DNA of 64,000 bases from Pavona decussata (GCA_977016875.1 CDRNST010000093.1:310001-374000); one strand, 5' to 3'. Counted from the stretch's first letter, positions 12,228 to 56,793 are shown. Notes: generated by a model not told the origin, from the letters alone. Made by a program: numbers and translations.

Positions 12228-15200
12228 ATGGCCTCTTCAGCAGCATCCTCCACAGAGCAGCGTCGGTGGTTGGTTGTGGGGATTGCTCTTCACCATGTTC
12301 TAACTCCATGCCTCAGAGAGAAAATTAAGAACGAAATGACACCGTTCTACCAACATGTGGTGCGAAACTTTGGATTGGACAAACAGACGTTTGCTACTCA
12401 GAAGAAAACCATTCCACCATCAACAATAAACTTGAACTACGGAAGCATTAACAATAATGCTGCAACTTATCGGCATCCACGTTACTACGACTACTGTGTA
12501 AAGGACGAAGTTTCATTGGCTAAGCTCTTTATGAAACCTTTTATGGCGCAGTTCAATGCGTTTGACCATTCCTTCGACTCTTCAGCAGCTCTGGCTGTTC
12601 TGTGTGGAGCATTGCCCTTCACGTCTGTCAAACGATTGGCTGAGGACGTGAGGTCCAAAGTCCGTAACAAATGGGCACATTGCGACTTCACAGACTGGAC
12701 GGAAGCGTATTACGATGACTGCTTTGATCTCATGGAGGCCCTAGTCGTGAACCTGAAAGTGGAACCTTCTGATGAAGTGAGAATTCTGGGTGAACTCAAA
12801 TTGTGGAGGAATCAGGGTAAGTCAGGGGGGCCTGGGGGCAAATGTGTAAATCAATAAAACCAGTAAAGTGAGCAACTTGTTAAGGAAGGTTAGTGTGCGA
12901 AGTTGAGATAGTTTTTCTACATAATTTAACTTTGTTTCCTGCCTGGAGTATTGTACATGTCTCTTCGGAAGTCCATAATAAAGTTGCACTAGCCTAATCT
13001 GCTAGGGGAGATGTCTGCTGTGGCACTCCCACTACCCTCGCCCTTTTTGGGTGAAACAAAGGCCACAAAAGGCATTTGCTCTCGAAGGTTAGTGCTTGCC
13101 GCGAAGACACGCATTACATCATTTGCGACTCTGTTTGCTCAATTATTGAAATCTTTCGTAGGAGCGACTATGTGAAGCCACAATTCCACGAAGATTAAGT
13201 AAACGTATAATTGTAGCTTAAATTTGCCTTCCTACTCATTTTTCCAGGGCTCGAGATATGCCTTGGAAAGCCGCTTGACGACACTCTTCTCCAAGACATG
13301 AGTAGGAAAATTCAACAACTTTCTGACTCTTTGGATGGTCACAAAGAGCTACATGACAACATTCACGTTACTCTTGGCTCGCTCAAGACTGAGTTCGAGA
13401 ACTCTATAGTCGAACTTCAAGAAAAACAGTCTATTCTGGAAAAGGCTTGTGAAGGGCTAAAGATCAACCAAGACATGATAAGAGAAGAGATGAGTTTTAA
13501 AGACAAGGAACGTGAGATTCAGTGCCGGGAAATAACAGAGAAAGTGCAAAGCCTGTGTAAAACCCTGGAAACCAAAAGTTTGCCTATGCAGAGAAATTTG
13601 GATGTGCTGATGACAAGAGTAAATAACATGTCTCCTTCAGATGATTTCAGTCAGGTTGTATTTGATGCTCCAGACCAAAGCAAGTGGTTTACAGGTAGAG
13701 AAAAAGAAGCCAAAAGCCTTGAAAGATGCCTCCCGTTTGGAGAAAGCAAAGGATTGAGAATGGCAGCCATCTGCGGTCTTGGAGGATGTGGAAAGACTAC
13801 CTTAGCGGTTCAGTTCGCATGGAAATATAAACACAAATACGAGGGAGGTGTATTTTGGATTTCCATGGAAGACGACACAAAGTTTGAAAACTCCATAACT
13901 GACCTAGCCTTGCATTTGGAAATTCAAGCAAATTCGTTCGATATGACGCTTTCAAAGGTTTTAACATGGATCTCTAAACAGCAGAGGCCCTGGTTGCTAG
14001 TTCTTGATGATGTCGACCAACAACACCTCTCTGAACAAATGCACAAGGTGTTGTGTGGTCGGTGGAAAAGGCAGGCTTGCGGCCACATCCTTCTAACAAC
14101 AAGACGTGAACCAAAAGAGGTCTGTGAGTCTATCAACTTGGAGCCATCTTGTTGTCTTGAAGTTTCTACCTTCCCCGAAGAGGATGCAAGAAGATTTCTT
14201 GTTACCCGGTGTGATGTCAATGATTCAAAAGTACAAAAGGCTGCTTTGGATGATCTTATCAGTGAGCTTGGCTGTCTCCCTCTAGCCCTAGAACAGGCCG
14301 GCGCCCATATTAAAGCTCTTCAGTGCTCCATCAGTACCTACCTTGAGGAGTACAAAAGTCAGCGATTAAATTTGTTGAGCCAGCACCCACGGGCAAAACC
14401 ACTTTGGGAATACGAGTCTAAACACCGCTTGGCAGTGCACACCACGTGGCTTTTAAACTTTGAGTACGTCCGAAAATCACCTCATGGGGAAATTGCATCC
14501 CGTTTTGTCCAAGCTGCTGCGTTTCTGGCGCCGAATGAAATCCAAGAAGAGCTAATCAACGTTCGATTGCTCTCCGATGACGACCCGTCTAGTCAAAATT
14601 ATGATCTTCCTCTGACAAGAAACCACATCATAGAAACTTTAACTAAGTTTTCACTTTTTCACAGAAAGAGCCCCAGATCCCTTGGATTGCACCGTCTGGT
14701 TCAGGAGGTAGTTCGAGACAGAATGACCTTTGAAGAAACCGCCTCGTCATTAATTAGATCAGTGCGAATTGTTCATCAATCTTTCAACGATTGCCCATCG
14801 CCAGACCAATTCCTTACGGATATCATACCGAGTGTACCAGAACAGCCATCCGCATTGGTCGTCAACCCTTCTCAGTTGTACATGTGGTCCAAGTTAACTA
14901 GTCATGCCTCTGAGCTACAGCATCATTTGAGGAAGTGGTTGGATCAGCAAGGCATCAAACGGGAAGATAAAACAGCCGTTTTAACTCGCGAGGCATCTCG
15001 TATTGTGCATGAAAATGCCATCCAATTAAGCGTCCATGGCCATCAAGAGGATGCCAAGGAATCCGAACGATTTGCATTTCAAATTTTGGATTCATGTCCA
15101 AGTGACGGTAAAGTCCTTGCCCTGGAGGATATCGGAAAGCTTTTTCCTCACACTTTACCTCTTTCTCAAAAGTTGCAGAAAACTGTGCTGTACTCATCTC

Positions 15201-24100: not shown

Positions 24101-25489
24101 CAGCATATAACTCGGTCAGTATAAGCCACAAGATACCGATCGATCGCCTCTTGATGTTGATGTCCGTTTAACCGGAACCAAGCAAACGGACATAACCTCT
24201 GCTCTTTCGCCGTGACCTAGAAAATCGAAAACGAATGGAGCCACCTCAAAGGTCAAGCTTTTTTTCCCAATCATCCTGTAGGCGCCGATAAAAACACGTC
24301 CTTTCCACAACAGTGACTTTCGATTACTTTGCGCTGATGTTCGCGGACATCTCTGTACTTTGCTTTTTGCAACCCATACACGAATTGCGTCGTTAAATGA
24401 ACGTATAATCAGTGCGAGGAATTTAGAAGTTCTTGGTCGTAGACCGAAATAACAATCGCTATCGAAGAGCTAGTGTTGTATGTTCGAACAGCTTCGCGCG
24501 TGATCTGGTTATGATCTGGCTTGATTGACGTGTACTTTCATATCGCTGGTTCTGATTGGATAATGCTACAGGAGGAAAATTCCTCCTGTAAATTTTGCGC
24601 GCTGCAAGTGATAAAAGTCGCTCGCGCCAGGTCCATTCAATGAGAATCGAGCGAGNNNNNNNNNNNNNNNNNNNNNNNNNNNNNNNNNNNNNNNNNNNNN
24701 NNNNNNNNNNNNNNNNNNNNNNNNNNNNNNNNNNNNNNNNNNNNNNNNNNNNNNNNNNNNNNNNNNNNNNNNNNNNNNNNNNNNNNNNNNNNNNNNNNNN
24801 NNNNNNNNATGGCGACCTCTTCAGCATAAAATGCTGATAAATAAAGGCCCAGCAAAAAAGTAAAGAGCCTAAAAAGCTTAAATACAGCCAATAACTTTAA
24901 AAGTAATTTTAAAAAAGCTCCTGACCTATAGAATTCTAAAGTTTTAAAAATCATGACCGAGTTAACATCCTTCGTTTAATTTAGAATATCATTAAGAAGT
25001 TTTGTTCCATTGAAATAAAAAGACTTCCTTGCAGTCTCAGTTCTCACGTTCGGAAGCATTAAGTTCTTCCCAGTCCCCCTCGTGTTGTGGATAGTTCTAA
25101 AAGCCTTAAAGGAAACCTCCACTCTCGAAACTTGTTGAAAATACAATCTACTTTGAAATTTCGTTGGAAAACATGGACATGATATTTCAGTGTCAGAAAA
25201 AAAACATGATTTGATTATCGCCTATTTTCGCTTTTAAATTTCCGAGCGCCGCCATCTTGGATTTCATGACGTAAAACGGTTGCTCAATTGTTTCACGCAA
25301 AAAAACTTCTGCTGAATAACAATAGCGGCAACCGTTACATGCCATAAAATTCAAAATGGCTGTACCAAGGAAATTTAAAAGCGAAATTAGTCGATAATCA
25401 TATCTAATTTTTAACACACTTGAATGTCATTTCTACGTTTTAGACTAAAATTTAAAATTTAGACACTATTTCCAACACTTAACCGTCAA

Positions 25490-26370: not shown

Positions 26371-29300
26371 ATGGCCTCTTCAGTAGCATCCTCAACAGAG
26401 CAGCGTCGGTGGTTAGTTGTGGGGATTGCTCTTCATCATGTTCTAACTCCATGCCTCAGAGAGAAAATTAAGAACGAAATGACACCATTCTACCAACATG
26501 TGGTGCGAAACTTTGGATTGGACAAACAGACGTTTGCTACTCACAACAAAACCATCTCACCATCAATAATAAATTTGAACTACGGAAGCATTAACAATAA
26601 TGCTGCAACTCATCGGCATCCACGTCACTACGACTACTCTGTAAAGGACGAAGTTTCTTTGGCCAAGCTCTTCATGAAGCCATTTATGGCGCAGTTCAAC
26701 GCGTTTGACCATTCTTTCGACTCTTCAGCAGCTCTGGCTGTCCTGTGTGGAGCATTGCCCTTCACGTCTGTCAAACGGTTTGCTGAGGATGTGAGGTCCA
26801 AAGTCCGCAACAAATGGGCACATTGCGACGTCACGGACTGGACGGAAGCGCATTACGATGACTGCTTTGATCTCATGGAAGCTCTAGTCGTGAACCTGAA
26901 AGTGGAACCTTCTGATGAAGTGAGAATTCTGGGTGAACTCAAATTGTGGAGGAATCAGGGTAAGTCAGGGGGGCCTGGCAGTAAATGTGTAAATGAATCA
27001 AACGAGTAAAGTGAGCAGCTTGTTAAGAAAGGTTATTGTATTAAAGTTGAGATAGGTTTTTTGCATAATTTAACCTTGTTTCCTGCCTGGAGTATTGTGC
27101 ACGTCTCTTCGGAAGTTCAGCGTGAGGCTGCACTATAGTCTAACCTGCTAGGGCAGATGCATTCTGCCTCTCTCCCCTCCCCGCGCCCTTTTTTCTGTGG
27201 GTGAAACAAAGGCCACAAAAGGCGTTTGGTCTCGAAGATTAGTACGTGCCGCGAAGACATGCAATACATCATTTGCAACTCTGTTTGCTCAATCATTGAA
27301 ATCTTTCGAAGGAGCTACTATGTGAAGCCACAATTCCACGAAGATTAAGTAAACGTATTGTAGCTTAAATTTGCCTTCCTACTCATTTTTTCCAGGGCTT
27401 GAGATATGCCTTGGTAAACCGCTTGACGACACTCTTCTCCAAGACATGCGTAGGGAAATTCAACAACTTTCTGACTCGTTGGATAGTCACAAAGAGCAGG
27501 ATGACAACATTCGTGCTACTCTTGGCTTGCTCAAGACTGAGTTCGAGAACTCTATAGTCTCACTTCAAGAAAAACAGTCCATTCTGGAAAAGGCTTGTGA
27601 AGGGCTAAAGAGCAATCAAGAAATGATAAGAGAAGAGATGAGTTCTAAAGACAAGGAACATGAGATGCAGTGGGAAATAACAGAGAAAGTGCAAAGCCTG
27701 TGTAAAACCCTGGAAACCAAAAGTTTGTCTATGCAGAGAAATTTGGATGTGCTGATGACAAGAGTAAATAACATGTCTCCTTCAGACGATTTCAGTCAGG
27801 TTGTATTTGATGCTCCAGACCAAAGCAAGTGGTTTACAGGTAGAGAAAAAGAAGTCAAAAGCCTTGAAAGATGCCTCCCGTTTGGAGAAAGCAAAGGATT
27901 GAGAATGGCAGCCATCTGCGGTCTTGGAGGATGTGGAAAGACTACCTTGGCGGTTCAGTTCGCATGGAAGTATAAACACGAATACGAGGGAGGTGTATTT
28001 TGGATTTCCATGGAAGACGACATAAAGTTTGAAAACTCCATAACTGACCTAGCCTTGCGTTTGGAAATTCAGGCAAATTCGTTCGATATGACGCTTTCAA
28101 AAGTTTTAACATGGATCTCTAAGCAGCAGAAGCCCTGGTTGTTAGTTCTTGACGATGTCGACCAACAACATCTCTCTGAACAAATGCACAAAGTATTGTG
28201 TGGTCGGTGGAAAAGGCAGGCTTGGGGCCACATCCTTGTAACAACAAGGCGTGAAACAAAGGAGGTTTGTGAGTCTATCAACCTGGAGCCATCTTGTTGC
28301 CTTGAAGTTTCTACCTTCCCCGAAGAAGATGCAAGAAGGTTTCTTATTACCCGGTGTGATGTCAGTGATTCAACAGAGCAAAAGGCTGTTCTAGATGAGC
28401 TTGTTCGCGAGCTTGGCGCTCTCCCTCTAGCCTTAGAACAAGCCGGCGCCCACATCAAAGCACTTCAGTGCTCCATCAGTACATACCTTGAGGAGTACAA
28501 AATTCAGCGATTAAATTTGTTGAGCCAGCACCCACGGGCAAAACCACTTTGGGAATACGAGTCTAAACACCGCCTGGCAGTGCACACCACGTGGCTTTTA
28601 AACTTTGAGTACGTCCGAAAATCACCTCATGGAGAAACTGCATCCCGTTTTGTCCAAGCTGCTGCGTTTCTGGCACCGAATGAAATTCAAGATGAGCTAA
28701 TCAACGTTCGACTGCTTTCCGCTGACGACCCGTCTAGTCAAAGTTATGGTCTTCCTCTGATAAGAAACCACATCATAGAAACTTTAACCAAGTTTTCACT
28801 TTTTCACAGAAAGAGCCCCAGATCCCTTGGATTGCACCGTCTCGTTCAGGAGGTAGTTCGGAACAGAATGACCTTTGAAGAAACCACCTCGTCATTGATT
28901 AGAGCAGTGCGGATTGTTCATCAATCTTTCCACGATTTCCCATCGCCAGACCAAATCCTTACGGATGTCATAGCGAGTGTACCAGAACAGCCATCTGCGT
29001 TTGTCGTTAACCCTTCTCAGTTATACATGTGGTCCAAGTTAACGAATCATGCTTCTGAGCTGCAGCATCATTTGAGGAAATTGCTGGATCAACAGGACAT
29101 CGGTCGGGAAAATAAAACAGCCGTTTTAACTCGCGAGGCATCTCGTATTGTGTATGAAAATGCCATTTATTTAAGCGTCCATGGCCATCAAGAGGATGCC
29201 AAGGTATCCGAACGATTCGCATTTCAAATTTTGGATTCATGTCCAAGTGACGGTAAAGTCCTTTCCCCCGAGGATATCAGAAAGCTTTTTCCACACACTT

Positions 29301-31498
29301 TACCTCTTTCTCAAAAGTTGCAGAAAACTGTGCTGTACTCATCTCGGCCTCCAATTGAGAATCAGGCGTCAGAAGGTTACAAAGAAACGCATCTACTAAA
29401 TGCTGCCACAGATGAGATCCGTTTACGAGGAAACGACTTTTTCAGAGACGGGTGTTTCAAAGAAGCTGTTGAAACGTACACACAAGCTCTCGAAGCAAGT
29501 AAGGGGGCAAAGCACCCGGACCCACGTTTGCTCAACAATCGAGCAACTGCGTATCTGAAAATGGGAAATTTTAAAGAATGTATCCATGATTCTGATGAGT
29601 ACATTAAAATCATGCCCAACTGTTGGAAAGGGTACACAAGGAAAGCTTTGGCTCTAAATGGGCTTGACATGAGGCTTCCTGCTTTATGCTCGGCCGCCAT
29701 CGCATATTACCACAATACCGACTGTTGTCGTCGTTATGAGGCTTTTAGAAATGAGTTTGGAGATCTTGATGCAAAATGGGAAGTTGCCACCAGTTCAGAA
29801 GCTCTCAGAAGTCTCCTACAACGAAACAAAAGCAAAAATTCGAGAAACAAAGTTCTGCTCCTCAAAAATTCACATTACGAAATAGACGACGCTGCGGCAG
29901 GTGACGACACGTTCACCTTTGTAACAGACACCATAATGGCTCCCCTTGGTAGCAGACCAAATACTACAATAAACTGCGGCGTCCTTTCTTTGCGAAAGAA
30001 TTGCTTTTTCGAAAACATTGATTTTTCTGCAAAGAATGGAATTGTGGTTCTACCAGGCGCGGATGTAGAATTCCACAAATGTAAATTTCGGAACGCTGTA
30101 TCAGAGCAGCCAGTGATATCTATTCTTGGAGCATCAAGGTTTTTTGAATGCGTGGTCAGGGACAGCAAAGGTAGTGGAATAGGCGTATCAGGACCTAACT
30201 CGTCTGCTGCACTGATTAAATGCCAAATAAGTGGAAACGGAAGGATGGAAAATCCATACGCCTTTGGGATCAGAGTGTTTGATGGGGGACATTTGTTAGT
30301 TCACAAATGCCACATATACGGAAATATCAGGGGAATTTGGGCTGATGAAGGCCCAAAAGCGGGTGTCCCTGCCAAGGGGGTGATGATAACAGATTCAGAG
30401 ATTTATGACAATAAATACGAGGGTATTGTCGTAGGTGCATTTACGTTGTCATCACCAGTGACCCCAGTCGTTGTGATACGTAGAAACAAGATTTACCACA
30501 ATGGAATGTTCGGTTTCCGCGCTACCCTTAACATCAATGACGTACTTTTTGAGAACAACATGGTGTTTGAAAATCTTTGGTGGGGCATTTGTGTGCACAA
30601 CAATTCAGGTGGCCTTTATAAAGGAAATGAGATTTGCAACAACAAAATGGGCGGAATAATGGTGGGTAAACAAAGTCCAGGAAAGCCATCTTGCGTGATC
30701 GAAAACAACTTTATCCACGACAACTGCGGGCCAGCCTTTCATGAAGGACTTCGTCCCTCCGAATGTGATTCGTTTCCAAAGGAATTACGAAAGTTTTTTA
30801 AACAAGCACTCACAGCACGAAAAGAAGGCCAATGCATGGGATATGGTGTTTCTCTTCCCAATAGTGTGTCAACATCATTTAATAACAATCACTGTCCTCA
30901 AAACGACCAAGGGCAGACGAATTTCACAGCAGCTACTCTGAAGCCTTACTGCGTCTTTTGTTTCAGTCGCGGCGTTGAATTGAAATTATGCAGAAGTTGT
31001 ATGACAGCTTCGTATTGCGGGAAGAATTGTCAAAAACTCCATTGGGTGAAGCACAAGTACATTTGCAAAGCCACTGGTCAAAGGAACGCCATAGAATTGC
31101 CTTTGCCAACAGAAGAGTATTTTATGGTATCTAAGGCCCATCCAGATTTAGAACCTACTGGTCCAGACTACGCTTCTCCTCCCCCGAGAGATGGAAATCG
31201 CTTTGTTGTTAAAATACAAACCTTAGAGGCAGGTTTTTATGGAGACATCATAGACATGAGAGGGTTCGTCAGTGATGAACAGGACCCCAGCAAAGCCAGG
31301 ATGGTGGTTTATGATCGTAGCCGTCATGTCAATTTTTATGCTAGTGGTAAACCGCAGCTCTATCATTTAATCATGGGATGCGGAATGATGGGAGTGAGCA
31401 TGACTCTTACGAAGAAATTGTATTGTTGGGCGGCATTCAAAGATGCTAAGACCCTTCGAATATTCACTCACGAATTCCCACAGGTTCAGAAATGGTGA
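26371..31498 (+). CDS. NLR-like STAND protein copy 2; join(26371..26959,27396..31498), 1563 aa
   Basis: Same 589-nt first coding exon, donor GTAAGT at 26960 and acceptor AG at 27394-95. All motifs are intact (RNKWAH, GLGGCGKT, LVLDDVD, GALPLAL, LHRLVQ, TPR, beta-helix, MYND). Confidence 0.88.
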
Positions 31499-37841: not shown

Positions 37842-40800
37842 TATTTTTGCTATAACTCTGAGTGACAAAACAGACGTTTATATATAGGATTTCATTCATG
37901 CATAGTGAGGGATTTCATGGTAACATCGCAAGAGAGTCTTTTTTAGCACCTTGTAAAGGGTAACCACTTAAGTAGTACAGTTTGTAGCGGAGAGTCCTTT
38001 TTGGCACTTTGTAAGGGTGACCAATTTAGTAGTGCATTTTTTTAGGCTTGATACTAGTACACTTAAAAGTGGAAATTGTGTTCATAGTTTGGAAAATCAA
38101 AAAGGCGGCTCAAACGACAACAAGATTAAATACAAGTTGAAAAATAAACCGATAAGTGAAGAAGACAACTAGCGTGGAAGTTAACGTTTGGTGCATAAAC
38201 TTTAAGTTAACCCTTATGACGTTCTTTCGCTTTACGTTTCTTTTCTTTCAACACAGGAATTGAGTTATGTCTTGGTAAACCACTTGATGACAGTCTTCTT
38301 CATGTCATTCACAGTGAGGTTCAACAACTTTCTGACTCGCTGGGAGTGCACAAAGATAGAGAAGAAAAAGATGTAAAAAGCATTTGTTCTACTCTTTCGT
38401 TATTTAAGTCTGAGTTTGACAGAGCCATTCGCTCGCTGGAACAGCAACAATCAAGTTTGCAAACAGGTTGTGAAGAGCTTAGGAACAGGCAAGATATTTT
38501 GCAAGAAGAAATGAGTACGAAAGACAAAGAACAGCAAGAACGCCTCAGGACATCCGAGTTGCACTGGAAATTGAGACAAGAACAAGTAGAAAACCTTTGT
38601 AAAGCAATGGAAGTCAAACGTGTTGCTATGCAAGGTGATTTGGACATACTGAGAACAAAGATGGACAGTTTGGCCTCTTCAGATGATTTCAAAGAGGTTG
38701 TGTTTGACGCTCCGGAACAAAACAAATGGTTTACAGGAAGAGAAAAAGAAGTAGACCTGCTTGAAAAATGCCTTCCGTTCGGGAGTGAGAGTGGATTGAA
38801 GATGGCGGCCATCTGCGGTCTTGGAGGATGTGGCAAGACAACTCTGGCAGCTCACTATGCGTGGAAGCATAAAACGACATACGAGGGAGGTGTTTATTGG
38901 ATATCCATGGAGGATGACAGAAAGTTGGAAAACTCCATGAATGACCTGGCGTTACGATTAGGAATGTTGGCAGAATCGTTCGATTTGACGCTCTCCAAGG
39001 TTCTAACGTGGATCGCCAACCTAAAAGTGCCATGGTTGCTGGTTCTTGATGACGTCGATCAACTGAATCTCTCTGAGCAAATGCACAAGATTTTGTCTGG
39101 TCGTTGGAAAAGGCAGGCAAGTAGCCACGTGCTGTTAACAACAAGACGTGAACCAAAGGAAGTTTGTGAGTCTGTAAATCTGGAGCCATCTTGCTGTGTT
39201 GGTGTATTTGCCTTCGCAGAAGACGAGGCCAAAAGGTTTGTTATCACCCGAAGTGGTGTTAGTGACTCTACGGGGCAAGAAGTGGCGTTAGATGAACTTG
39301 TTCGTGAACTTGGATGTCTCCCTCTTGCTTTAGAACAAGCTGGTGCGCACATCAAAGCCCTTCAATGCCCCGTCCGTAACTATACAGAGGAGTACAAAAC
39401 TCAACGGTTAAAGTTGTTGAAACAGCATCCACGGGCAAAGCCATCATGGGAATACGAGTCTGAAAATCGCCTGGCAGTGCACACCACATGGCTTTTAAAC
39501 TTTGAGTACGTAAGAAAATCATCGAATGGAGAGCTTGCATCCAGTTTTATTCAAGCTGCTGCTTTTTTAGAACCAAATGAAATCCAAGAAGAACTAATCA
39601 ACACTCAGCTGTTTTCTGCTGATTACCCATCGCGTGAAACGTCTGACGTTGATCTGGTGAAAAAGCAGATCATAGACATTTTGACTAAGTTTTCACTTTT
39701 TCAAAGAAAGGCTTACCGCTCCCTTGGGTTACACCGTCTAGTTCAGGAAGTAATTCGTAGCAGAATGAACAATAAAGAAACTGCGTCATCCTTGCGTAGA
39801 GCGGTGGCAATTCTTCATCATTCCTTCAATGTTTGCCCATCGCCTGACCAAATCCTTGCCGATATCACAGCAGGTGTAAAAGAACAAGCATCGGAGTCCG
39901 TCGCTAACCCCTCTCGTTTCCATTTGTGGTTGAAGTTAACAAGCCATGCTTCAGAGCTACAGCGGCATCTAAAGTCTTTTCTGGACCAAAAGGAAATCCA
40001 AAGGGATGTTAAAACGATGGTTTTAACTCGTGAAGCTTCTCGTGTTGTTTACGAAAGTGCGTTACAATTTAGCGTCCGTGGCCATCACGAGGAAGCAAAG
40101 GAAGCCGAACGATTTGCATTTCAGATTCTGGATTCGTGTGTGGCTGATAGCGTAACCGTAACAATCGAAGACCTCGCAAGGCTCTTCCCCCACACTCTAC
40201 CCCTTCCTCAAATATTGCAGAAAATAATTTTGTACTCGTCTCGTACCCCAACAAACAATGAGAACTTTGCAACTGATGATCAGAAATGTGTTTCTATAGA
40301 TGAGATTCGTCTACGAGGAAACACCTTTTTCAAAGATGAGCAGTTCGAAGAAGCAGTTGAGTCTTACACTGAAGCAATTGAAGCAAGCAAGCAGGCAAAA
40401 TGCCTGGATCCGCGTTTGTTTCACAATCGAGCAACTGCATATCTCAAACTGAGAAATTTTGAAAAATGCCTCCAAGATTCCGAGGAATATATCAAAATAC
40501 AGCCTAAATGCTGGAAAGGATACACTAGGAAAGCTTTAGCTTTACTTGGGCTTGGAAGAAAGGGTTCCGCAATGTGCTTTGCAGCTATTGCATACTCTCA
40601 CGACACAAGATCCTGTCGGCGTTATGAGGCTTTCCAAGGTGCTTTCAAATATATGGATGAAAAGTGGGAAATTGTTGACTCCTCTGAGGCCCTTAAGCGT
40701 TCCATTCTGCGAAACAAAAGCATCAACTTGGGAAAGAAAGTCCTACTTCTTACCAACGACCATTATGAAATAGTTGGTGGACGACATACCCAATTAAATG

Positions 40801-41070
40801 AGATGACTTTGGTTTTGAAGAATTCCGATGGTTCTAATGACATTGTGGACACCACATTGGCGGCTTATGGCGATGGAAAGGACGTTGTTATAAAATGTGA
40901 TGCACTTCGTTTCTGCAAGGAGTGCTTTATTCAAAACATCTCCTTTGAGGCACAAAGTACAATTTTTGTTGGACCGGATGGCGATGTGGAATTCACCAAC
41001 TGTAAATTTAAGAGCACCGACGCATCATTTTCAGCAATAGTAGTTTACGGAACAGCAAAGTTCATACAGT

Positions 41071-42104
41071 CATACCTGACATCTTTATCAGGACTTTCAA
41101 GGCACTTTACCATCAGAGCTCAAGCTGTGTTATAGAAGGCGGAAGGTACTCCAGCTGGTTTGAAGTGAAGAGTGGCGTGCGACAAGGGTGTGTGATGTCT
41201 GGCTTCATCTTTGTCCTGATCATGGACTGGGTCATGCGGCACACAAACGATAGAAGACGCGGCTTGAGATGGAAGTTTACATCGGTTCTAGAAGACCTGG
41301 ACTATGCTGATGATGTTGCTCTTCTCTCAAGCAGATTTGGTGATCTACAGGATAAGACTGACAGGCTAGTAGACATTGCTGGTATTGTGGGACTCAAGAT
41401 CAACCCACACAAAACAAAGACGCTTAGAATGAACCACAAATGCACAGACAACATCAAGGTAGAAGGAGAGGGTGTAGACGACGTGAAATCCTTTGTATAC
41501 CTAGGATCGGTGCTAGACAAACATGGTGGCACACAGGCAGACATCAAGAGGCGACTAGCAGTAGCCAGAAATGCATTTACCAGACTACAGAGCATCTGGA
41601 GGTCACAGAGATTCAGCAACAAGACCAAGCTGCGTATCCTGAACTCCAATGTGCTGTCTGTGTTACTGTATGGGGCCGCTATGTGGAGAATAACGACAGT
41701 TGATCTCAACAAACTTGATGTATTCCACCGCACATGCCTAAGAAGAGTATTAAGGAGATTTTGGCCCTACCATCTGAGCAACGAAGAGCTATATGAAGCA
41801 TCAGGGAGCATGCCAGTGTCCACCCTCATACAAGTGAGAAGGTGGCGTTGGATAGGCCACGTCTTGAGGAAAAGTCCTAACGACATCTCAAGGACTGCAC
41901 TAACGTGGGCACCCGAAGGTAAGAGGAAGCGAGGCCGGCCAAGGGAAACGTGGAGACGAACTGTGGAGAAAGAAAGGAATCAGCTGGGTTGGCAGTCATG
42001 GGAGGCTGCTGTCGCCTCGGCGGCAGACCGGGATGGGTGGCGCAATCTTCTCGCCGGCCTTAAGAGTCCACGTGGGCCCAAAGAGGATAAGTAAGTAAGT
42101 AAGT
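41071..42104 (+). mobile_element. 5'-truncated RTE-clade LINE with (TAAG)n tail and 14-bp TSD
   Basis: RT frame is open from 41072 to 42094 (IPDIFIRTFKALY..SGVRQGCVMS..LDYADD..FVYLGS..RRWRWIGHVLR..KRKRGRPRETW). Tail TAAGTAAGTAAGTAAGT at 42088-42104; TSD AAAGTTCATACAGT at 41057-70 and 42105-18. Confidence 0.95.
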
Positions 42105-43581
42105 AAAGTTCATACAGTGCACAGTCAGTGACAGCTTAGGAGGTGGAATTACAGTGGAAGGTCTGGAATCGTCAGCTTCATTGATAAAATGCAAAGTTAC
42201 TGGAAATGGTAAAAAACCATGGGAAACGTCAGGCATTAAAGCTTTTGCCGGCGGGCGCTTAGACATTCATGAGTGCCTGATCAATGGAAACACTGAAGGA
42301 GTTCATGTTTTTTACTTGTCATGGCAAAATGGTGGTTTGGCGAAGGAAGTCTTGATAGAAGATTCCGAAATTTACGACAACAAATACGAAGGTGTTCGTG
42401 TAGCTGGAGCTCAAAATTCGAGTTGTCCTGTAACCATACGCAGGAATAAAATTTACCACAACAATGGGCATGGCGTTGAGGTGTCATTCCATGCTAAAAA
42501 CGTACGTTTGCAGGAAAACACTATTTTCGAAAACTTCTGGTGGGGAATTTGGGTGCAGTGCAACTCCAGTGGTTACTACGATGGTAACGAGATTTGTAAC
42601 AACAAGATGGGTGGAATGCGAGTAGGAAAGCAAAGTCCAGGAAAACCAGCATGTGTGGTGGAAAAAAATTTTATTCATGACAACTGTGGACCTGCCTTTC
42701 ACGAAGCATTGCATGTTTTTGAATACTTTTCTTTTCCAGATGATCTTCAGGAGCACTTCCTAAGACACGAGCAGAGAAACCAAGAGTGTTTGCTTGGCGC
42801 CAAGAGAACCGAATTTAAAATCGATGTTTCCTGTCCTAACGTAGTCTTAGCAGAGTTCAAGTCCAACAACCAGTGCGATCGAAATTCCATACCAAAGGCC
42901 AACTTACAGTCAACTTCTTCGAAAACAAACTGTGCCTTTTGTTTTCGGCGCGAAGTTAAATTAAAATGCTGCAAGAGTTGTATGACAGCAAGGTATTGTG
43001 GAAAGGAATGCCAGACGCTCCATTGGGGAAGGCACAAGTACATCTGTGCGGCTATAGCACAAAGAAACGCCATAGAGGTTTCGATTCCTGTCTGTGATGG
43101 TATTCAAACTCGAATTTGTACAACACATCCCAGTCTTGATCCAACGGGACCCCGCTATGCACCCCGTCCTCGAAAAGATGGAACCCGTTTTGTTGTCAAA
43201 ATTCAAACTTTCGAGGGGTTGTTTGCAGGTGTATGCCTTGATTCTAGAGGATATGTTAGTGATGAATACAATCCTGAAAAAGCGAGCATGACTATTTATG
43301 ACCGCAGCCGCTACGTCGATTTTAAAACTTCTAAACAGCCGCGGCTTTATCATTTAGTCATGGAGTGTGGCGTAATGGGATCCAGCATGTACCTCGCCAA
43401 GAAGCTGTTTTGTTGGGCAGCATACAAAGATGGTAAAACCCTTCGAATTTTCACTCACGAGTTTCCACCCGTTCAGAAGTGGTGATAGGCGCTAAGCATT
43501 GGGATTAGCGGGCGTTATGAGGTGCAATGGAATTTGTGGTTCCTTATCTCTTGTTGATTCGAGCTAGCCTAGTACATTTGC

Positions 43582-44990
43582 AATGACGCAAAGTTCGAAA
43601 ACTTTATGAATGACCTGGCGTTGCGATTAGGAATGTTGGCAGAATCGTTCGATTTGACGCTCTCCAAGGTTCTAACTTGGATCGCTTAATACTGGAAATG
43701 GCCAAAAACCACGAGAAATGTCAGGCATTAAAGTGTTTGCCAGTGGGCGCTTAGACGTTCATGACGGTGCCTGATCCATGGAAGCACTGAATTAGTTCAT
43801 GTTTTTTACTTGTTATGGGAAAATGGTGGTTTAGCGAAGGAAGCCTTGATAGCAGCTTCCGACATTTAAGACAACAAATACAAAGGTGTTCGTGTAGCTG
43901 GGGCTCAAAATTCGAGCTACCCTGTAATCTTTCGCGGGAATAAAATTTACCACAACAATGGGCATGGCGTTGAGGTGACACTCCATGCTAAAAACGTGCA
44001 TTTGCAGAAAAAAACACTTTTTTTGAAAACTTCTGATGAGGAATTTGGGTGCAGTGCAATTCCAGTGGTTACTTCGAAGGTAACGAGATTTGTAACAACA
44101 AGATGGGTGGAATGCGAGTAGGAAAGCAAAGTCCAGGAAAACCAGCATGTGTGGTGGGAAAAAATTTTATTCATGACAACTGTGGACCTGCCTTTCATGA
44201 AGCATTGCAATTTTTTGAACGTATTTCTTTTCCAGACGATCTTCAAGTGCACTTCCTAAGACACGAATAGGGAAACATAAAGTGATTGTTGAGGGACAAG
44301 AGAACCGAATTTAAAATCGATGTTTCCTGTCCTAACGTAGTTTTGGCAGAGTTCAAGTCCAACAACCAGTGCGAGCGGAATTCCATATCAAAGGCCAACT
44401 TACAGTCAACTTCTTCGAAAACAAACTGTGCCTTTTGTTTCCGGTGCGAAGTTGAATTAAAATGCTGCGAGCGTTGTATGACAGCAAGGTATTGTGGAAA
44501 GGAATGCCAGACGCTCCATTGGGGAAGGCACAAGTACGTCTGTGCGGCTATAGCACAAAGAAACGCAATAGAGGTTTCAATTCCAGTCTGTAATGGTTTT
44601 GAAGTTCGAATTGGTACAACACATCCCAGCCTGGAACCAACGGGACCCCGCTACGCATCCCCTTCTCCAAAAGATGGAACCAGTTTTGTTGTCAAAATTC
44701 AAACTTTCGAGGGGTTATAGTGTGGCACATACCTTGATCCTAGAGGATATCTTAGTGATGAATACAATTCTGAAAATTAAAAGCGAGCATGACTATTTAT
44801 GACCGCAGCCGCTACGCCGATTTTAAAACTTCTAAACAGCCGCGGCTTTAATTATCATTTAGTCATGGAGTGCGGCGTAATGGGATCCACCATGTACCTC
44901 GCCAAGAAGCTATTTTGTTGGGCAGCATACAAAGATGGTAAAACCCTTCGAATTTTCACTCACGAGTTTCCACCCTTCCAGAAGTGGTAA
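43582..44990 (+). pseudogene. Internally deleted pseudogene copy: ~100 bp of NB-ARC fused to beta-helix, MYND and C-terminal domain
   Basis: 43582-43685 matches the NB-ARC segment MNDLALRLGMLAESFDLTLSKVLTWI of copies 3/4. 43688-44990 parallels 42198-43485 with stops and frameshifts (ORF pieces at 44049, 44286 and 44799). The 3' flank is also duplicated to about 45065. Confidence 0.88.
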
Positions 44991-48999: not shown

Positions 49000-49308
49000 G
49001 CATGCAATGTCCCGGATTTGGTGACGTCAAGACAGTCACGCGAAGGAAGACAAATTACTTTTGCTTTCACTGTCGGCAGCTGGTTCTTGGTACCCCTCCG
49101 AGAATTTTGATCTAAAAGGATTCTGAAAAAAGTCTAACACGAAGAAACGTTAGAGGATAGACGAAGAAAACCAACGAAAGAAGTGCATTGTGGTCCTAGT
49201 TAGTAAAGGTTGGAAACCAACCTCGAGATTCCGAGAATCTGTTTGTAACCCCCAGGAAGTCCTAATACAGCAAAATCTGCTGAGCAAGTGCATTCATACT
49301 TGGTAAGT
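49000..49308 (+). promoter_or_regulatory. Putative promoter and first exon (type A) of copy 4
   Basis: TGACGTCA at 49022-29; ISRE-like ACTTTTGCTTTCAC at 49057-70 (one change versus copy 1); donor GTAAGT at 49303; acceptor AG at 50758-59. Confidence 0.5.
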
Positions 49309-50847: not shown

Positions 50848-53800
50848 ATGGCCTCTTCAGCAGCATCCTCCACAGAGCAGCGTCGGTGGTTAGTTGTGGG
50901 GATTGCTCTTCATCATGTTCTAACTCCATGCCTCAGAGAGAAAATTAAGAGCGAAATGACACCACTCTACCAACATGTGGTGCGAAACTTTCGATTGGAC
51001 AAACAGACGTTTGGTTCTCACAAGAAAACTGTTCCACTATCAACAATAAACTTGAACTACGGAAGCATTAACAATAATGCTGCAACTCATCGGCATCCAC
51101 GTCACTACGACTACTGCGTAAAGGACGAAGTTTCATTGGCCAAGCTCTTTATGAAACCTTTTATGGCGCAGTTCAATGCGTTTGACGATTCCTTCGATTC
51201 TTCAGCAGCTCTTGCCGTCCTCTGTGGAGCGTTGCCATTCACGTCTGTCAAACGGTTGGCTGAGGACGTGAGGTCCAAAGTTCGGAATGAATGGGCACAT
51301 TGCAACTTCACGGCTTGGACTGAAGGACATTACAATATCTGCTTTGATCTAATGGAGGCTCTGGTTACAAATCTGCGCCTTAAACCTGCTGACGAAGCAA
51401 AGATTCTGGATGAACTCAAGTTTTGGAGAACGGAAGGTATGGTAGTAATAACTGATATCTAGTGTAACTTGTATCAAAACCATCGCTCGCATGACAAACC
51501 ATCATTGCTTAATGCAACCTCGATGCTCATGGTAAGCTCTTTAACGTAGCATTTGTATTGATTTGTTTCAGTTTTGGTTTTTTCATTAACTGTACAATGA
51601 GGTAGAATCTGAGCGCGATCCTGGAGCGTACTAGAGATTTGTACATGTCACTTAATAAAAGATAGAGCACTTGATGACGGAAAAAGGTCTTCAGAGTTGC
51701 ATTACACTCTGTTTTTTTTTATATAAGAACGTCTAATTTTGGAGCTGAGGCTGCACGTTCCTATATTTTTTTGCGATTTCAGACTGAAAACGTTCTTAAG
51801 ATGTTCTTAAATTACATGGTATACACCACATGTATTTCAGTAAATCGATGCGGACGCACCAGGATACCTGTCCAAGTGCATTGCCTCCTGAGATATGATA
51901 TCAAGAACTGATGATTATATGACAAACCGAGATGTGTGTCACCATTGTTAATGTTATACAAAACATGCCCTTAAGTATTTTGGTTAATTTACATTTGTTA
52001 CTTTGATTTTATATACAGATTATCCAAATAAAAACCGCGTTCTTAATCTACTCAGTCTGAGGAACGTTCTTAATACGTTCTTAAAATTTTGGTTAATCTC
52101 AGCCTCGACGTTCTTATAAAAAAGGTTCTTATAAAAAAAACAGAGTGTATACAACTTTAAGCGTACACACAAAAAAATGTGGAATAATTTTATTTGGATG
52201 GAGTGGGCCAATTCAGTGACCTTGCGCCGGTGCCAGTGCAAACGTCCCAACCGCTAAACTATATATACACCCAAAGATTGCTATATTCTTACCAGAACTC
52301 TGAGTGACAAAACAGACGTTCATATATAAGATTTTTTTCATTCATAGTGAGGGATTTCATGGTAACATAACAAGAGAGTCCTTTTTGGCACTTTTTGAAG
52401 GGCTACCACTTTAGTACTGCAGTTTTTTGAGCTTGATACTAGTACACTTAATAGTGGAAATTGTGTTAAAAGTTTGGAAAATCAAAAATGCGATGCAAAC
52501 AACAACTATGAAGCGTAAGTTAAAAAATAAACCGACAAGTGAAGAAGACAACTGGGATGGAAGATAACTTTTCGTGCCCATAAATGTTAACACTTATGAC
52601 GTTCTTTCGCTTTATGTATGTTTCCTTTCGACACAGGAATTGAGCTATGTCTTGGTAAACCACTTGATGACAGTCTTCTTCACGTCATTCGCAGTGAGGT
52701 TCAACAACTTTCTGACTCGCTCGGTGTGCACAAAGATAGAGAAGAAAAGGATGTAAAAAGCATTTGTTCTACTCTTTCGTTATTTAAGTCTGAGTTTGAC
52801 AGAGCCATTCGCTCGCTGGAACAGCAACAGTCAAGTTTGGAAACAAGTTGTGAAGAGCTAAGGAACAGGCAAGATATTTTGCAAGAAGAAATGAGTACGA
52901 AAGACAAAGAACAGCAAGAACGCCTCAGAACATCCGAGTTGCACTGGAAAATGAGACAAGAACGAGTAGAAAACTTTTATAAAGCTCTGGAAGTCAAACG
53001 TGTTGCGATGCAAGGAGATTTGGACATACTGAGAACAAAGATAGAAAGCTTAGCCCCTTCAGATGATTTCAAAGAGGTCGTGTTTGATGCTCCGGAACAA
53101 AACAAATGGTTTATAGGAAGAGGGAAAGAAGTAGACCTACTTGAAAAGTGTCTTCCTTTCGTAAGTGGCAGTGGGTTGAAGATGGCCGCCATCTGCGGTC
53201 TTGGAGGATGTGGGAAGACAACCCTGGCAACGCACTATGCATGGAAGCATAAACAGGAATACGAGGGAGGTGTTTATTGGATATCCATGGAGGATGACAG
53301 AAAGTTAGAAAATTCCATGAACGACCTGGCGTTGCGGTTAGGAATGTTGGCAGAATCGTTCGATTTGACGCTGTCCAAGGTTCTAACGTGGATCACTAAA
53401 CGAAAAATGCCATGGTTGCTGGTTCTTGATGACGTCGATCAACTGAATCTCTCTGAGCAAATGCACAAGGTTTTGTCTGGTCGTTGGAAAAAGCAGGCAA
53501 GTGGCCACATCCTGCTAACAACACGACGTGAACCAAAGGAAGTTTGTGAGTCTATAAGTATGGAGCCATCTTGCTGTGTTGGTGTGTTTGCCTTCTCAGA
53601 AGACGAAGCACAAAGGTTTCTTGTCGGCCGAAGTGATGTCACTGATGCTACAGGACAAGAGTTGGCATTAGATGAACTTGTTCGCGAACTTGGTTGTCTC
53701 CCTCTTGCTTTAGAACAAGCTGGTGCGCATATCAAAGCCCTTCAATGCCCAATCAATAACTATCTTCAGGAATACAAAATTCAGCGGTTGAAGTTGCTCA

Positions 53801-56793
53801 GCGAACATCCACGGGCAAAGCCATTGTGGGAATACGAATCTCAAAGCCGCCTGACAGTGCATACCACATGGCATTTAAACTTTGAGTACGTGAGAAAATC
53901 ACCTCATGGGGAAGTTGCATCCAGTTTTGTGGAGGCTGCTGCGTTTCTGTCGGCTGAAGAAATTCAAGAAGAGCTGATCAATCATCAACTGCTTCCCACT
54001 GATGATCCTAGTCATGAAAAGTTTAACCTCATGATGAAAAAGCAGATCGTAGAAATTTTGACCAAGTTTTCACTCTTTCAGAAGAAGAATACGAACTCCC
54101 TTGGATTGCATCGACTAGTTCAGGAGGTAATTCGTAGTAGTCTGACCACCGAAAAAATTACTTCGTCCTTGCTTCAAGCTGCGCGAATTCTTCATCAATC
54201 CTTGCGCGACTGCCCATCGCCTGACCAAATTCTCGCGGATATCGCAACAAGTGCACCGGAACAGCCATCTACATCTGTGGCGAACCCCTCTCAGTTGTAT
54301 TTGTGGTCGAAGTTAACCAGTCATGCCACTGAGATACAACAGCACCTGAAGTCACTTCTGGACAATCAAAGCATTGAAAGAGAAGTAAAAGCCGTGGCTT
54401 TAACTCGTGAGGTATCTCGTGTAGTGTATGAAAACGCTGTACAATTAAGCGTCCTTGGTCATCAAGAGAAAGCCAAAGAGGCCGAAAGATTTGCTTTACA
54501 AATTCTGGTTTCGTGTCAGAGTGATCCCTTGGCCGTTACTCTTGACGATTTACGAAACCTTTTTCCTCATACTCTGCCTCTTCCACAGGTGGTACAGCGA
54601 ATTATCTTGTACTCATCTCGGCCTCCGGTTGATAATCAGAGATTTGAAAATGATGAAGAGAAAAAAAGTGTTGCCATAGATTCGATTCGTCTGGAAGGAA
54701 ATGCCTTTTTCAAGGAAGGGCGTTTCACAGAGGCAGTTGAGAAGTACACGAAGGCAATTGAAGAAAGTAAGGGAACAAAAGCCTCAGATCCACGCCTGTT
54801 TATAAATCGAGCAACTGCGTATCTCAAAGTAGGAAGTTTTGAGGAGAGTCTTCGAGATGCCGAGGAATATATTAACTTTATGCCCAACTGCTGGAAAGGA
54901 TACACAAGAAAGGCATTGGCTTTAAATGGAATTGGAAAAAGGCTTCCAGCCTTATGCTCAGCAGCCATCGCCTATTACCATGAAGAAAACTGTTGTCGCC
55001 GTTATGAGGCTTTTTACAGTGTTTTTAAGGAGCTGGATGGACATTGGGCGGTTATAGACTCTTCTGAAACACTAGACATCGCACTTACTCTGAATCAGAA
55101 GTCTTGTTCAAGAAAGAAAGTTTTGTTACTGCAAAGTGGAGAATATGTTACCAACCGTGGCGGGTTTATGTCACAAATTAACCTTGTCGCCGTAAGTCAT
55201 GCTGAGGGTGCCACAATAACAAGTGATGAACTTCTTCTCTGCAAAGATTGTTTTATTGAACATATCAACTTTAAGACGAAGAATGGTGTTGTTGTTTTGC
55301 CTTATGGAAAAGTCGACTTCAGTAATTGCAAATTCCAGTGCACCTCAGTGGAAAGGCAAGCCATTCAAGTTAGCGGGACGGCTACGTTCATTAAATGCGA
55401 AATAAACAACAGCAAAGGTGGTGGAATGGTAGTAGCGGGTCCCAAGTCCTTGGCTACTTTAGTGAAATGCCATATTAGTGGAAATGGAAGTAAACCAATA
55501 CATTCGGCTGGTTTAAAAGTATTAGATGGTGGATGCCTAGTTGTGCAAGAATGTCTTGTTCATGGAAATACTGAAGGAATCCACGTCGATTCTACTTTTC
55601 CGGAGTTAGTCGTGGCAAAAGAATTAACACTGACTCATTCGGAAATTTACGACAACAAATATGAAGGCATTATTGTGACTGGAGTTCCAAACGCCTTTCC
55701 ATCTCCATCTGTCACAATAGAAGAGAATAAGATTTACCATAATGGCGGATATGGTGTTCGTGTGTCATACTGTGCAAACAACGTACGTTTTAAGAGAAAC
55801 GTGGTGTTTGAAAACTTCTGGTGGGGAGTCTGGGTGCAGTGCAACTCCGGTGGCTACTACGAAGGCAACGAGATTTGTAACAACAAGATGGGTGGAATAA
55901 GGGTTGGCAAACAAAGTCCAGGAAAACCAGTATGTGTGGTGGAAAACAATGTAATTCATGATAACTGTGGGCCGGCCTTTCACGAGGGATTGCGATACTT
56001 CGAATTTTATTCCTTTCCCGATGAATTGCAACCCCTTTTTATGAAACAACTCTTCGAAACTCACTTGAAATTAGATTTGGCCCCTTTAATTAATCAGGGT
56101 GATTTGAAGGTGGACAGGGAGATTTCTCTCCCAAATGTTGTTCAAGCTCTGTTTAATTCCAGTAATCAGTGTTTTCAAAATGAAAAAATGCGAAACCACA
56201 CACAGAACACAGCCGCAAAAACAATCTGCGCCTATTGCTTCAGAAGCGACACAGTTCTTAAATCTTGTAAACGCTGCATGACTGCGAAATATTGTGGGAA
56301 AGAATGTCAAACAAAACACTGGGGAAGGCACAAATTCATCTGTCAAGCTTTAGGTCAGAAAAACGTCATAGAAGTTTCTATCCCATATTATCCTGGTTAC
56401 GTTTCCGAGGGTGTTTCTTCGACAAATCCTGATCTAGAACCCACTGGTCCAGATTATGCACCCTTACCCCCAATAGATGGAACACGATTTATTGTAAAGT
56501 TACAAACTTACGAAGGATTGATAGATAACGTGATGTGCCTTGATGGGAGAGGATATGTCAGTGACGATTACAATCCTGAAAAAGCCGGCATTTATGTTTA
56601 CGATCGCAGTCGTTACGTTGATTTTACGACTGCTGGTCAACCACGGCTCTTCCATTTAATCATGGAGTGTGGCATTGTGGGATCCAGCATGTATCTCAGT
56701 AAGAAGCTTTATTGTTGGGCCGCATATAAAGATGGCAAAACTAAAACTCTTCGAATTTTCACTCACGAGTTTCCACCAGTCCAGAAATGGTAA
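50848..56793 (+). CDS. NLR-like STAND protein copy 4; join(50848..51436,52637..56793), 1581 aa
   Basis: Donor AAG|GTATGG at 51437, acceptor acacAG at 52636, phase 1. Motifs RNEWAH, GLGGCGKT, LVLDDVD, GCLPLAL, LHRLVQ, TPR, beta-helix, MYND CAYC..CKRC..YCGKECQTKHWGRHKFIC. Confidence 0.88.
51705..52147. mobile_element. Tc1/mariner-type MITE in the copy-4 intron, TA TSD
   Basis: TIRs CACTCTGTTTTTTTT..ATAAGAAC / GTTCTTATAAAAAAAACAGAGTG, with TA at 51703-04 and 52148-49. The empty site cagagtttcatTAtacaac is in the copy-3 intron (~37421-37439). Confidence 0.85.

Follow-up and report, generated by a model that had tools for sequence, protein, structure and literature searches.

The tandem gene family in a 64,000-nt stretch of Pavona decussata DNA (the window) raises the question of whether corals encode receptors that sense a ligand and respond by cleaving RNA. 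Four paralogous loci, all on the + strand of the window, share an identical domain order, and they constitute a tandem scleractinian-coral cluster of NLR-like STAND genes, in whose products a HEPN RNase head is probably switched by NB-ARC after ligand sensing. The original prediction of four paralogs of ~1,560-1,590 aa plus two remnants was correct as to the four loci, their shared order and the two remnants, but the number of intact two-exon genes is three (copies 1, 2 and 4, with stop-free frames of ~4.7 kb and uninterrupted products of 1,564, 1,563 and 1,581 aa, respectively), copy 3 being broken by a retroelement.

Copy 1 begins with an ATG in exon 1 (12228..12816), the open frame of which encodes a 196-aa HEPN-like domain containing R146-N-K-W-A-H151 and is followed after 12816 by the donor GTAAGT. 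A 431-nt phase-1 GT-AG intron (12817..13247) separates it from exon 2 (13248..17353, 1,367 aa and a stop), which starts with a linker and continues with NB-ARC (~13745-14314), DUF7779 (~14495-14737), a 3-TPR module (~15278-15478), a beta-helix (~15797-16771), zf-MYND (~16805-16921) and a C-terminal domain (16943-17350). Copy 2 (exon 1, 26371..26959; exon 2, 27396..31498) is 94% identical to copy 1 in the amino acid sequence of exon 1 and 87.6% identical in that of exon 2, with a dN/dS of 0.32 for the latter. Copy 4 (exon 1, 50848..51436; exon 2, 52637..56793) has an exon 2 product 57% identical to that of copy 1, with its domain order unchanged. No coding similarity was found from copy 1 to copy 2 (between 17353 and 26371), a spacer in which two assembly gaps (23103..23271 and 24656..24808) are situated outside every gene, touching no exon and affecting no reading frame. 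A 196-aa 'ORF' at 23021-23611 spans a run of N and was rejected as a product of the gap.

Copy 3 has an exon 1 at 36545..37133 and an exon 2 in two parts: a 5' part (38257..41070) that stays open through the linker, NB-ARC, DUF7779, TPR and the start of the beta-helix, and a 3' part (42105..43485) with the remaining beta-helix, zf-MYND and the C-terminal domain in a different frame. Between them lies a 5'-truncated non-LTR retroelement (41071..42104, + strand), with an ORF containing RVT_1 and DUF6451 (41165-42094), a (TAAG)n tail and a flanking 14-bp target-site duplication (41057-41070 and 42105-42118); an intact homologous contig (L002) is continuous across the insertion point. Because the flanks are in different frames, a second intron was rejected in favor of an insertion. 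Remnant 1 (43582..44987, + strand) combines a P-loop scrap (43582-43686) with a decayed duplicate of the copy 3 3' end that has seven in-frame stops (43690-45066 is 90% identical to 42198-43560), and remnant 2 (57507..57584, + strand) is a 26-aa scrap with a weak resemblance to the beta-helix region (E 1.5e-4). The history of the array is one of duplication, partial duplication and decay, and the anticipated birth-and-death evolution can be seen.

The junctions 12816/13248, 26959/27396, 37133/38257 and 51436/52637 are, as had been claimed, exact phase-1 GT-AG boundaries in the sequence, and the intron occupies an identical position in 4/4 copies. Two intron-less Logan contigs from homologs (L001 and L002, 75-79% nucleotide identity) have exon 1 and exon 2 joined at the predicted nucleotide, the copy 1 intron being absent from L001 at exactly the same point, and in an NCBI model from Oculina patagonica (P0009, 1,578 aa) the same N-terminal domain is continuous with the remaining protein. 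The RNA check proposed for the four junctions recovered no joint for the window's copies: among the RNA-run contigs no spliced reads or joints from the window's own copies were found, and the contigs that match do so in the conserved part of exon 1 only (95-99% identity) and may derive from paralogs.

The exon 1 product is a compact helical domain of 196 aa with a near-invariant R-N-x-W-A/G-H motif, present as R146-N-K/E-W-A-H151 in 4/4 window copies and as R-N-x-W-A/G-H in 43 of 48 diverse relatives (RNRWTH in one, no R-N motif in four). This motif has the Rx4-6H form of the HEPN superfamily, with a polar residue after R, and its R, N and H are each retained in 44-46 of the 48 relatives (30-85% identity), along with the acidic residues D113 and D117. 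The AF2 model of the copy 1 domain (pLDDT 94.8) places the motif at the close of helix 129-150, downstream of an extended stretch without helix (insert 49-117), and the C-terminal end of helix 3 is where the HEPN motif has been described (Anantharaman et al. 2013, PMC3710099). The modelled fold would suit HEPN, but unrelated four-helix bundles score equally in structure comparison; Foldseek returned no significant match, and a profile built from the 48 relatives found no solved structure by sequence. The window products are below every Pfam HEPN cutoff, HEPN_Swt1 scoring 12.9-14.8 bits in three copies (best 14.8 versus 27.5) and copy 3 having no HEPN match. Relatives have weak matches to HEPN_Swt1 (31/48) and DUF4559 (13/48), one of them (P0339, 61% identical) scoring above the Pfam cutoff for DUF4559 (31.1 versus 27 bits), which we take to be the CXorf38 family, and HEPN_DZIP3 or DUF4559 is found in the closest clusters of the ESM-Atlas. 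The predicted HEPN identity of the N-terminus is supported by the motif, the DUF4559 match of P0339, the weak Swt1 matches and the compatible fold, but not by Pfam scores of the window copies; the case for a CXorf38/DUF4559-DZIP3-type HEPN domain, with these several supports, is good but not decisive. Other proteins with the same domain are of the nSTAND3-ankyrin, NACHT-LRR, Roc-COR and PARP14-type RRM kinds, a variety of partners that is typical of a mobile effector module.

Exon 2 yielded matches above the Pfam cutoffs for NB-ARC, DUF7779, TPR_1/TPR_2, Beta_helix and zf-MYND. NB-ARC (50.6-56.8 bits, cutoff 23.5) is a better match than NACHT (24.4-34.1 bits), Walker A (GLGGCGKT) and Walker B (WLLVLDD) are intact in 4/4 copies, and every copy keeps 'LGLHRLVQEV', which reads LHR rather than MHD, at the distance expected for a winged-helix motif. 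The effector-switch-sensor layout that had been proposed is present, with NB-ARC above cutoff and its Walker motifs intact. No LRR was matched in the window genes, which differ from the canonical NACHT-LRR NLRs of animals and are NLR-like by layout only.

The TPR part forms no long sensor array but a 3-repeat co-chaperone-type module, with its best PDB matches among EEVD-binding co-chaperones (HOP, SPAG1, RPAP3, SGT1, TOM70, SGTA and PP5; E 1e-21 to 1e-8). The residues of an Hsp70/Hsp90-type carboxylate clamp are present (IRLRGN..., LNNRA, KGYTRKA; positions R/K-N-N-K-R), and the clamp pattern is found in 107 of 120 homologs, 95 of these 107 having arginine in place of the first clamp lysine. 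The beta-helix is right-handed and parallel, ~325 aa in length, with a profile score above cutoff and a matching fold; by shape, the nearest eukaryotic beta-helix architecture is the FBX10 cluster. The zf-MYND domain (35.2-40.6 bits versus a cutoff of 22.7) has its C4-C2HC ligand pattern in the three intact copies and in the 3' part of the copy 3 exon 2, and it is followed by a C-terminal tail domain of 135 aa found in this family only.

The window genes have dN/dS of 0.14-0.43 (0.14-0.32 between the youngest pair), and the three intact copies are under purifying selection. Diversifying selection on the sensor is unsupported, as no segment of the genes scanned has dN/dS > 1, the maximum (0.58-0.67) falling where the beta-helix begins. 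The exon-1 domain occurs at least 58 times in the genome, in tandem clusters, each subtype has counterparts 84-93% identical in other coral assemblies, and exon 1 is homogenised between subtypes.

RNase L and the KEN domain of Ire1 are HEPN RNases activated by dimerisation or oligomerisation, with a composite Rx4H site. In the mechanism proposed here, the C-terminal composite of beta-helix, MYND and tail would keep the coral protein off until bound by a ligand, which may be a protein or glycan of microbial, viral or symbiont source. Nucleotide exchange at NB-ARC would then lead to oligomerisation, and the oligomer would pair the N-terminal HEPN domains, completing a composite metal-independent RNase site; cleavage of RNA could stop translation or kill the cell, as with RNase L, Ire1 and bacterial HEPN-STAND proteins. 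Hsp70/Hsp90 most likely bind at the TPR clamp to fold or control the receptor, and sensing is probably not a task of the clamp. The fuller proposal is more tentative and may well not hold: that these are animal ligand-gated suicide or translation-arrest RNases with a cytosolic beta-helix/MYND sensor for a microbial, viral or symbiont molecule and a built-in Hsp70/Hsp90 dock in the role that SGT1-HSP90 has for plant NLRs. Such proteins, if real, would give animals an equivalent of bacterial HEPN-STAND defence and add to innate immunity a second RNase-L-like arm, independent of the first.

Other readings of the cluster are less probable. The N-terminal domain could be no RNase but a module that binds RNA, dimerises or, as an adaptor, brings in another effector, a role ascribed to some HEPN domains of the Swt1/DZIP3 type; the scores below Pfam HEPN cutoffs and a structural match no better than that of generic four-helix bundles agree with this, and Swt1 HEPN is listed as inactive (Anantharaman et al. 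2013, PMC3710099) and DZIP3-like HEPN termed 'RNA-binding' (Noel et al. 2023). We consider such a module unlikely, since conservation of the R, N and H with D113 and D117 would be hard to explain without catalysis, and the CXorf38 group is rated 'Active' (Anantharaman et al. 2013, PMC3710099).

A chaperone-linked regulatory or substrate-recognition scaffold, in which TPR binds Hsp70/Hsp90, the beta-helix and MYND bind endogenous proteins in the manner of FBXO10/FBXO11-type CASH domains and NB-ARC acts as a timer, would account for the co-chaperone affinity and conserved clamp of the TPR, the FBX10-like shape of the beta-helix, dN/dS below 1 throughout, and subtype counterparts similar enough across corals to indicate long-lived rather than fast-turning lineages. 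Multiple tandem copies, partial duplicates, a retroelement-broken member and the clustered arrays of the exon-1 domain characterise conflict-driven receptor families rather than housekeeping genes, and the N-terminal module is common to NACHT-LRR and STAND-ankyrin expansions; a scaffold instead of a pathogen sensor is accordingly quite improbable. A set of decaying or untranscribed duplicates, their long ORFs serving no present function, would fit the lack of junction-spanning RNA from the window copies, the broken copy and the two remnants, but is very hard to reconcile with three long stop-free frames, the low dN/dS of the youngest pair, intact splice sites, Walker motifs and zinc ligands, and homologs that exist as intron-less contigs.

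Contrary to what had been suggested, the architecture is already described. A supplement lists "NB-ARC, TPR, beta-helix, Zinc_finger" as orthogroup OG0000334, with members of ~1,553-1,606 aa in Acropora digitifera and Porites and an N-terminus given as 'noneDetectedN', and the paper itself counts such families among the tandemly duplicated immune gene families of corals (Noel et al. 2023). The window genes have the same C-terminal domain order and size, the likeness being one of domain order and length; their N-terminus, in contrast to the catalogue entry, is assigned as HEPN-like and lies on its own exon. New here are the HEPN assignment for an OG0000334-type architecture, the TPR carboxylate clamp and the homogenisation of exon 1 between subtypes.

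Cnidarian HEPN-STAND fusions have been described since 2013: cnidarians, cephalochordates and molluscs have NACHT/STAND NTPases that bear HEPN domains of the CXorf38/DUF4559 and DZIP3 types, in families with lineage-specific expansion for which functions in RNA-level defence or apoptosis have been proposed (Anantharaman et al. 2013, PMC3710099; Emery et al. 2021, PMC8260672). Like these, the window proteins have a putative N-terminal HEPN with R-N-x3-H on a STAND NTPase; unlike them, they use NB-ARC where the others have NACHT, end in TPR, beta-helix and MYND in place of LRR, WD40, ankyrin or Death, and have a HEPN-like domain that shows no Zn-ribbon insert and falls below Pfam cutoffs. Bacterial HEPN-STAND-TPR fusions have been noted as well (Anantharaman et al. 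2013, PMC3710099), and the tripartite effector-STAND-sensor layout is common to bacterial Avs/HEPN-STAND systems and the window genes, which are eukaryotic, have a spliceosomal intron and carry a sensor of another kind. At E <= 0.01 the products of neither exon matched a PADLOC model, and no Avs family was identified; the resemblance is one of analogy, not membership. The self-association logic proposed is the same as that of RNase L and Ire1, but their switch is a pseudokinase or kinase in place of NB-ARC, and no sequence relationship is detectable beyond the motif. The TPR, unlike those of HOP/STI1, SPAG1, RPAP3, SGT1, TOM70 and PP5, sits inside a STAND protein, with EEVD docking putative. 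The beta-helices of FBXO10/FBXO11 CASH domains and of AlgG, AlgE4 and tailspikes (bacterial/phage polysaccharide-active proteins) are 8-17% identical to that of the window genes.

The NLR-like genes clustered in the window are real, mostly intact and selectively maintained in this coral. A listing of open reading frames and Pfam scans of the window identified four loci on the + strand with identical domain order, and related pieces were mapped across the window by tblastn with the two exon products of copy 1 as queries. Relative to copy 1 (12228-17353, +), copy 2 (26371-31498, +) is 94% identical in exon 1 and 88% in exon 2, copy 3 (36545-43485, +, exon 2 in two pieces) is 83% identical in exon 1 and 59% and 52% in exon 2, and copy 4 (50848-56793, +) is 85% identical in exon 1 and 57% in exon 2. 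There are also a remnant (43582-44987, 38-66% identical to copy 1 over three pieces) and a 26-amino acid scrap (57507-57584, 62% identical). In every copy, the first coding exon comprises 589 nt and is followed by a phase 1 intron with a GTAAGT or GTATG donor and a polypyrimidine-AG acceptor; these canonical introns were found at precisely the splice junctions of the original prediction. Exons were joined by a local script only, for product length and stop count, with N runs left unfilled, and every search and fold took a single exon, or part of one, as its query. Of the four intact paralogs that had been proposed, copies 1, 2 and 4 give stop-free joined products (1,564, 1,563 and 1,581 amino acids, respectively), but exon 2 of copy 3 is broken by an insertion.

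Both assembly gaps (N runs at 23103-23271 and 24656-24808) are located in the spacer of copies 1 and 2, where tblastn with the copy 1 exon products found no family-related coding sequence between 17353 and 26371. An open reading frame there (23021-23611, 196 amino acids) was considered as a family remnant and rejected, as it has no similarity and crosses an N run. Thus, the gaps affect no reading frame. The same spacer contains a palindrome-like inverted repeat of about 350 bp (25133-25477, 71% identical to its own reverse complement), immediately 5' of the duplicated unit that contains copy 2 and near the second gap.

The 1,034 bp that interrupt copy 3 (41071-42104) could be read as a second intron, but they include an open reading frame with RVT_1 and DUF6451 matches, end in (TAAG)n, and have a perfect 14-bp direct repeat on either side (AAAGTTCATACAGT, 41057-41070 and 42105-42118). 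The flanking parts of copy 3 are in different reading frames, and an intact homolog (L002, a Logan contig) is uninterrupted across the insertion point. The intron was therefore rejected on the target-site duplication, the reverse transcriptase frame and the frame change, which together with the uninterrupted homolog identify the segment as a 5'-truncated non-LTR retroelement insertion. For local alignment, an X was placed at the break. If transcribed, copy 3 would yield a naturally tail-less HEPN-NB-ARC-TPR product; an intact relative, 93% identical, is found in another assembly (P0034). The retroelement looks recent and has a reverse transcriptase frame (309 amino acids) that is still open.

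The predicted exon 1-exon 2 splice receives strong, indirect support from homologous sequences. Two Logan contigs, L001 (SRR22097825, 5,124 nt) and L002 (SRR22097830, 6,257 nt, 6,106 nt of it analyzed), contain single open reading frames of 1,533 and 1,595 amino acids with UTR-like flanks, and in their alignment the last base of exon 1 is immediately followed by that with which exon 2 begins (...LWRNQ-G-LEICL... across the junction). Because exactly the intron is missing, these contigs are argued to be cDNA. The NCBI model of an Oculina patagonica protein (P0009, 1,578 amino acids) has the same exon fusion. A read search targeting copy 1 (5,401 nt) found no exon 1-exon 2 joint in reads on that copy, which neither supports nor refutes splicing of the window's copies: contigs from three runs (two RNA and one probably RNA) cover 12276-12595 only, plus one 40-nt piece of exon 2, and those on exon 1 (95-99% identity) may derive from paralogs. 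One run (X15) covers the intron and therefore behaves as DNA.

The N-terminal head of this coral NLR-like cluster is likely the HEPN RNase that was predicted. Pfam has no match at cutoff for the 196-amino acid exon 1 product, and HEPN_Swt1 is weakly matched over the motif in three copies (E 0.035-0.14). Each of the residues R146, N147, W149, H151, D113 and D117 is conserved in 44 or more of 48 aligned relatives; HEPN_Swt1 is weakly matched by 31 of the 48 and DUF4559, which we take to be the CXorf38 family, by 13, with close relatives reaching or approaching the DUF4559 cutoff (31.1 versus 27 bits for the homologous protein P0339). HEPN_DZIP3 or DUF4559 is carried by the nearest ESM-Atlas clusters. 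The AF2 model (pLDDT 94.8) is helical with a long insert and places the motif at a helix end and loop start, the position given for helix 3 of HEPN domains (Anantharaman et al. 2013, PMC3710099). A recent preprint on human CXorf38 puts forward RNEIMH as a motif and, about 28 residues N-terminal to it, an Asp as its partner, a spacing that D117 and R146 fit. Neither Foldseek with the exon 1 model against the PDB (E ≤ 0.001) nor a profile of the 48 relatives against PDB sequences returned a match, and a homodimer prediction (score 0.00, controls not run) counts neither for nor against. Given the conserved motif residues, the HEPN_Swt1, DUF4559 and Atlas matches, and the helical model with its motif placement, the domain is likely HEPN, and the predicted RNA catalysis is plausible. 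An exhaustive search for the domain returned 398 cluster representatives (E ≤ 0.001). The domain is joined to nSTAND3-ankyrin, NACHT-LRR, Roc-COR and PARP14-type RRM proteins as well as to full-length NB-ARC/TPR/beta-helix/MYND family members; it is thus a mobile module.

Exon 2 encodes domains above Pfam cutoffs: NB-ARC (50.6-56.8 bits), DUF7779, TPR_1/TPR_2, Beta_helix (63.7-84.9 bits) and zf-MYND (35-41 bits), with intact Walker A (GLGGCGKT), Walker B (WLLVLDD) and LGLHRLVQEV motifs and MYND ligand pattern. The TPR part is a single three-repeat module that, among solved structures, best matches EEVD-binding co-chaperones (SPAG1, HOP/STI1, RPAP3, SGT1, TOM70, SGTA and PP5), and its carboxylate-clamp positions are R-N / N / K-R, a pattern found in 107 of 120 homologs; the clamp offers a simple, testable handle for chaperone dependence. 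In a model of the last 518 amino acids (pLDDT 87.2), residues 1-325 form a right-handed parallel beta-helix, followed by the MYND finger and a predicted alpha/beta domain of 135 amino acids, a tail that differs from the usual LRR, WD40 and ankyrin sensors. The 135-amino acid domain has no Pfam match, no significant PDB sequence match and no usable Atlas feature match, and is restricted to this coral NLR-like family; the matches in structure searches with the 518-amino acid model were filled by the beta-helix.

The array clearly illustrates the evolution of such clusters, with whole-unit duplication, partial duplication, retroelement disruption, and apparent homogenization or swapping of an effector exon. 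Copies 1 and 2 are part of a duplicated unit of about 11.5 kb (11629-19316 and 25767-33477, 90% identical; 20549-23081 and 33679-36150, 84% identical), and the decayed remnant duplicates the 3' end of copy 3 (90% identity). The dN/dS ratio is below 1 throughout (copy 1 versus copy 2: exon 1, 0.14; exon 2, 0.32), with a peak of 0.58-0.67 at the start of the beta-helix. Copies 1 and 4 are 85.6% identical at the nucleotide level in exon 1 (dS 0.33) versus about 72% in exon 2 (dS 1.38), and the 85.6% stretch includes about 2 kb upstream of exon 1 (10229-12808 versus 48817-51428); copies 3 and 4 have a similar 5'-to-3' identity gradient. Subtypes resemble each other far more closely in exon 1 and its upstream 2 kb than in exon 2, which suggests that gene conversion or exchange has homogenized the effector exon, together with its promoter, or swapped it between subtypes. 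Counterparts of each subtype in other coral assemblies are 84-93% identical, so the subtypes appear to be older than those species splits.

Across the genome, tandem clusters on ten contigs account for at least 58 matches to the exon 1 domain, and the beta-helix/MYND tail is found on three contigs only (the window's own, C225 and C28). Large tandem arrays of exon 1 domain matches (34-40% identity) on C186 (1.68-2.15 Mb, about 14) and C157 (0.58-1.04 Mb, about 17) are presumably joined to other STAND architectures. C28 (1.33-1.43 Mb) contains a more distant beta-helix/MYND cluster (31-33% identity), in which the HEPN-like match is split (residues 7-111 and 108-194), suggesting an extra intron within the domain.

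To our knowledge, corals have hundreds of NLR-like genes, almost none with a known ligand or output. Named homologs of the family are anthozoan only (Oculina, Montipora, Stylophora, Desmophyllum, Paramuricea and Dendronephthya). The architecture had been thought undescribed, which does not hold: orthogroup OG0000334 (NB-ARC, TPR, beta-helix, Zinc_finger) is catalogued by Noel et al. (2023), together with DUF4559-NACHT-ankyrin/TPR and DZIP3-like_HEPN-NB-ARC-TPR genes, in a study that stresses tandem duplication of coral immune families, and cnidarian HEPN-NACHT expansions have been reported (Emery et al. 2021, PMC8260672; Anantharaman et al. 2013, PMC3710099). A literature search on NB-ARC combined with MYND in cnidarian proteins returned no article text, and the architecture appears in supplementary tables only. 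What is new is the HEPN assignment for OG0000334, which fills the 'noneDetectedN' blank of the published catalogue, the recognition of a co-chaperone-type clamp in the TPR module, and the description of the array. PADLOC found no bacterial Avs-type match, and the likeness to bacterial Avs is by analogy only. The proposed activation mechanism derives from the layout and from the precedents of RNase L, Ire1 and bacterial HEPN-STAND proteins. Should the head have RNase activity, STAND receptors would be tied to the degradation of RNA in an animal of early-branching lineage, and this would bear on whether bacteria and animals share an effector-STAND-sensor logic with nuclease outputs.

Elsewhere in the window, a 362-amino acid open reading frame at the left end (12-1100, +), with no Pfam match, contains a GIY-YIG-like stretch (VYKIPCECGKVYIGETGR) and, judged from its translation, may be the C-terminal portion of a Penelope-like retroelement. 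Short dispersed repeats beside and between the genes (46819-47219 and 60225-60628; 9258-9581 and 48008-48284; 76-87% identity) are probably transposon fragments. Downstream of the cluster is a KCTD8/12/16-like gene or exon (62071-62970, +; BTB_2 and H1_KCTD8_12_16, E 7.7e-49).
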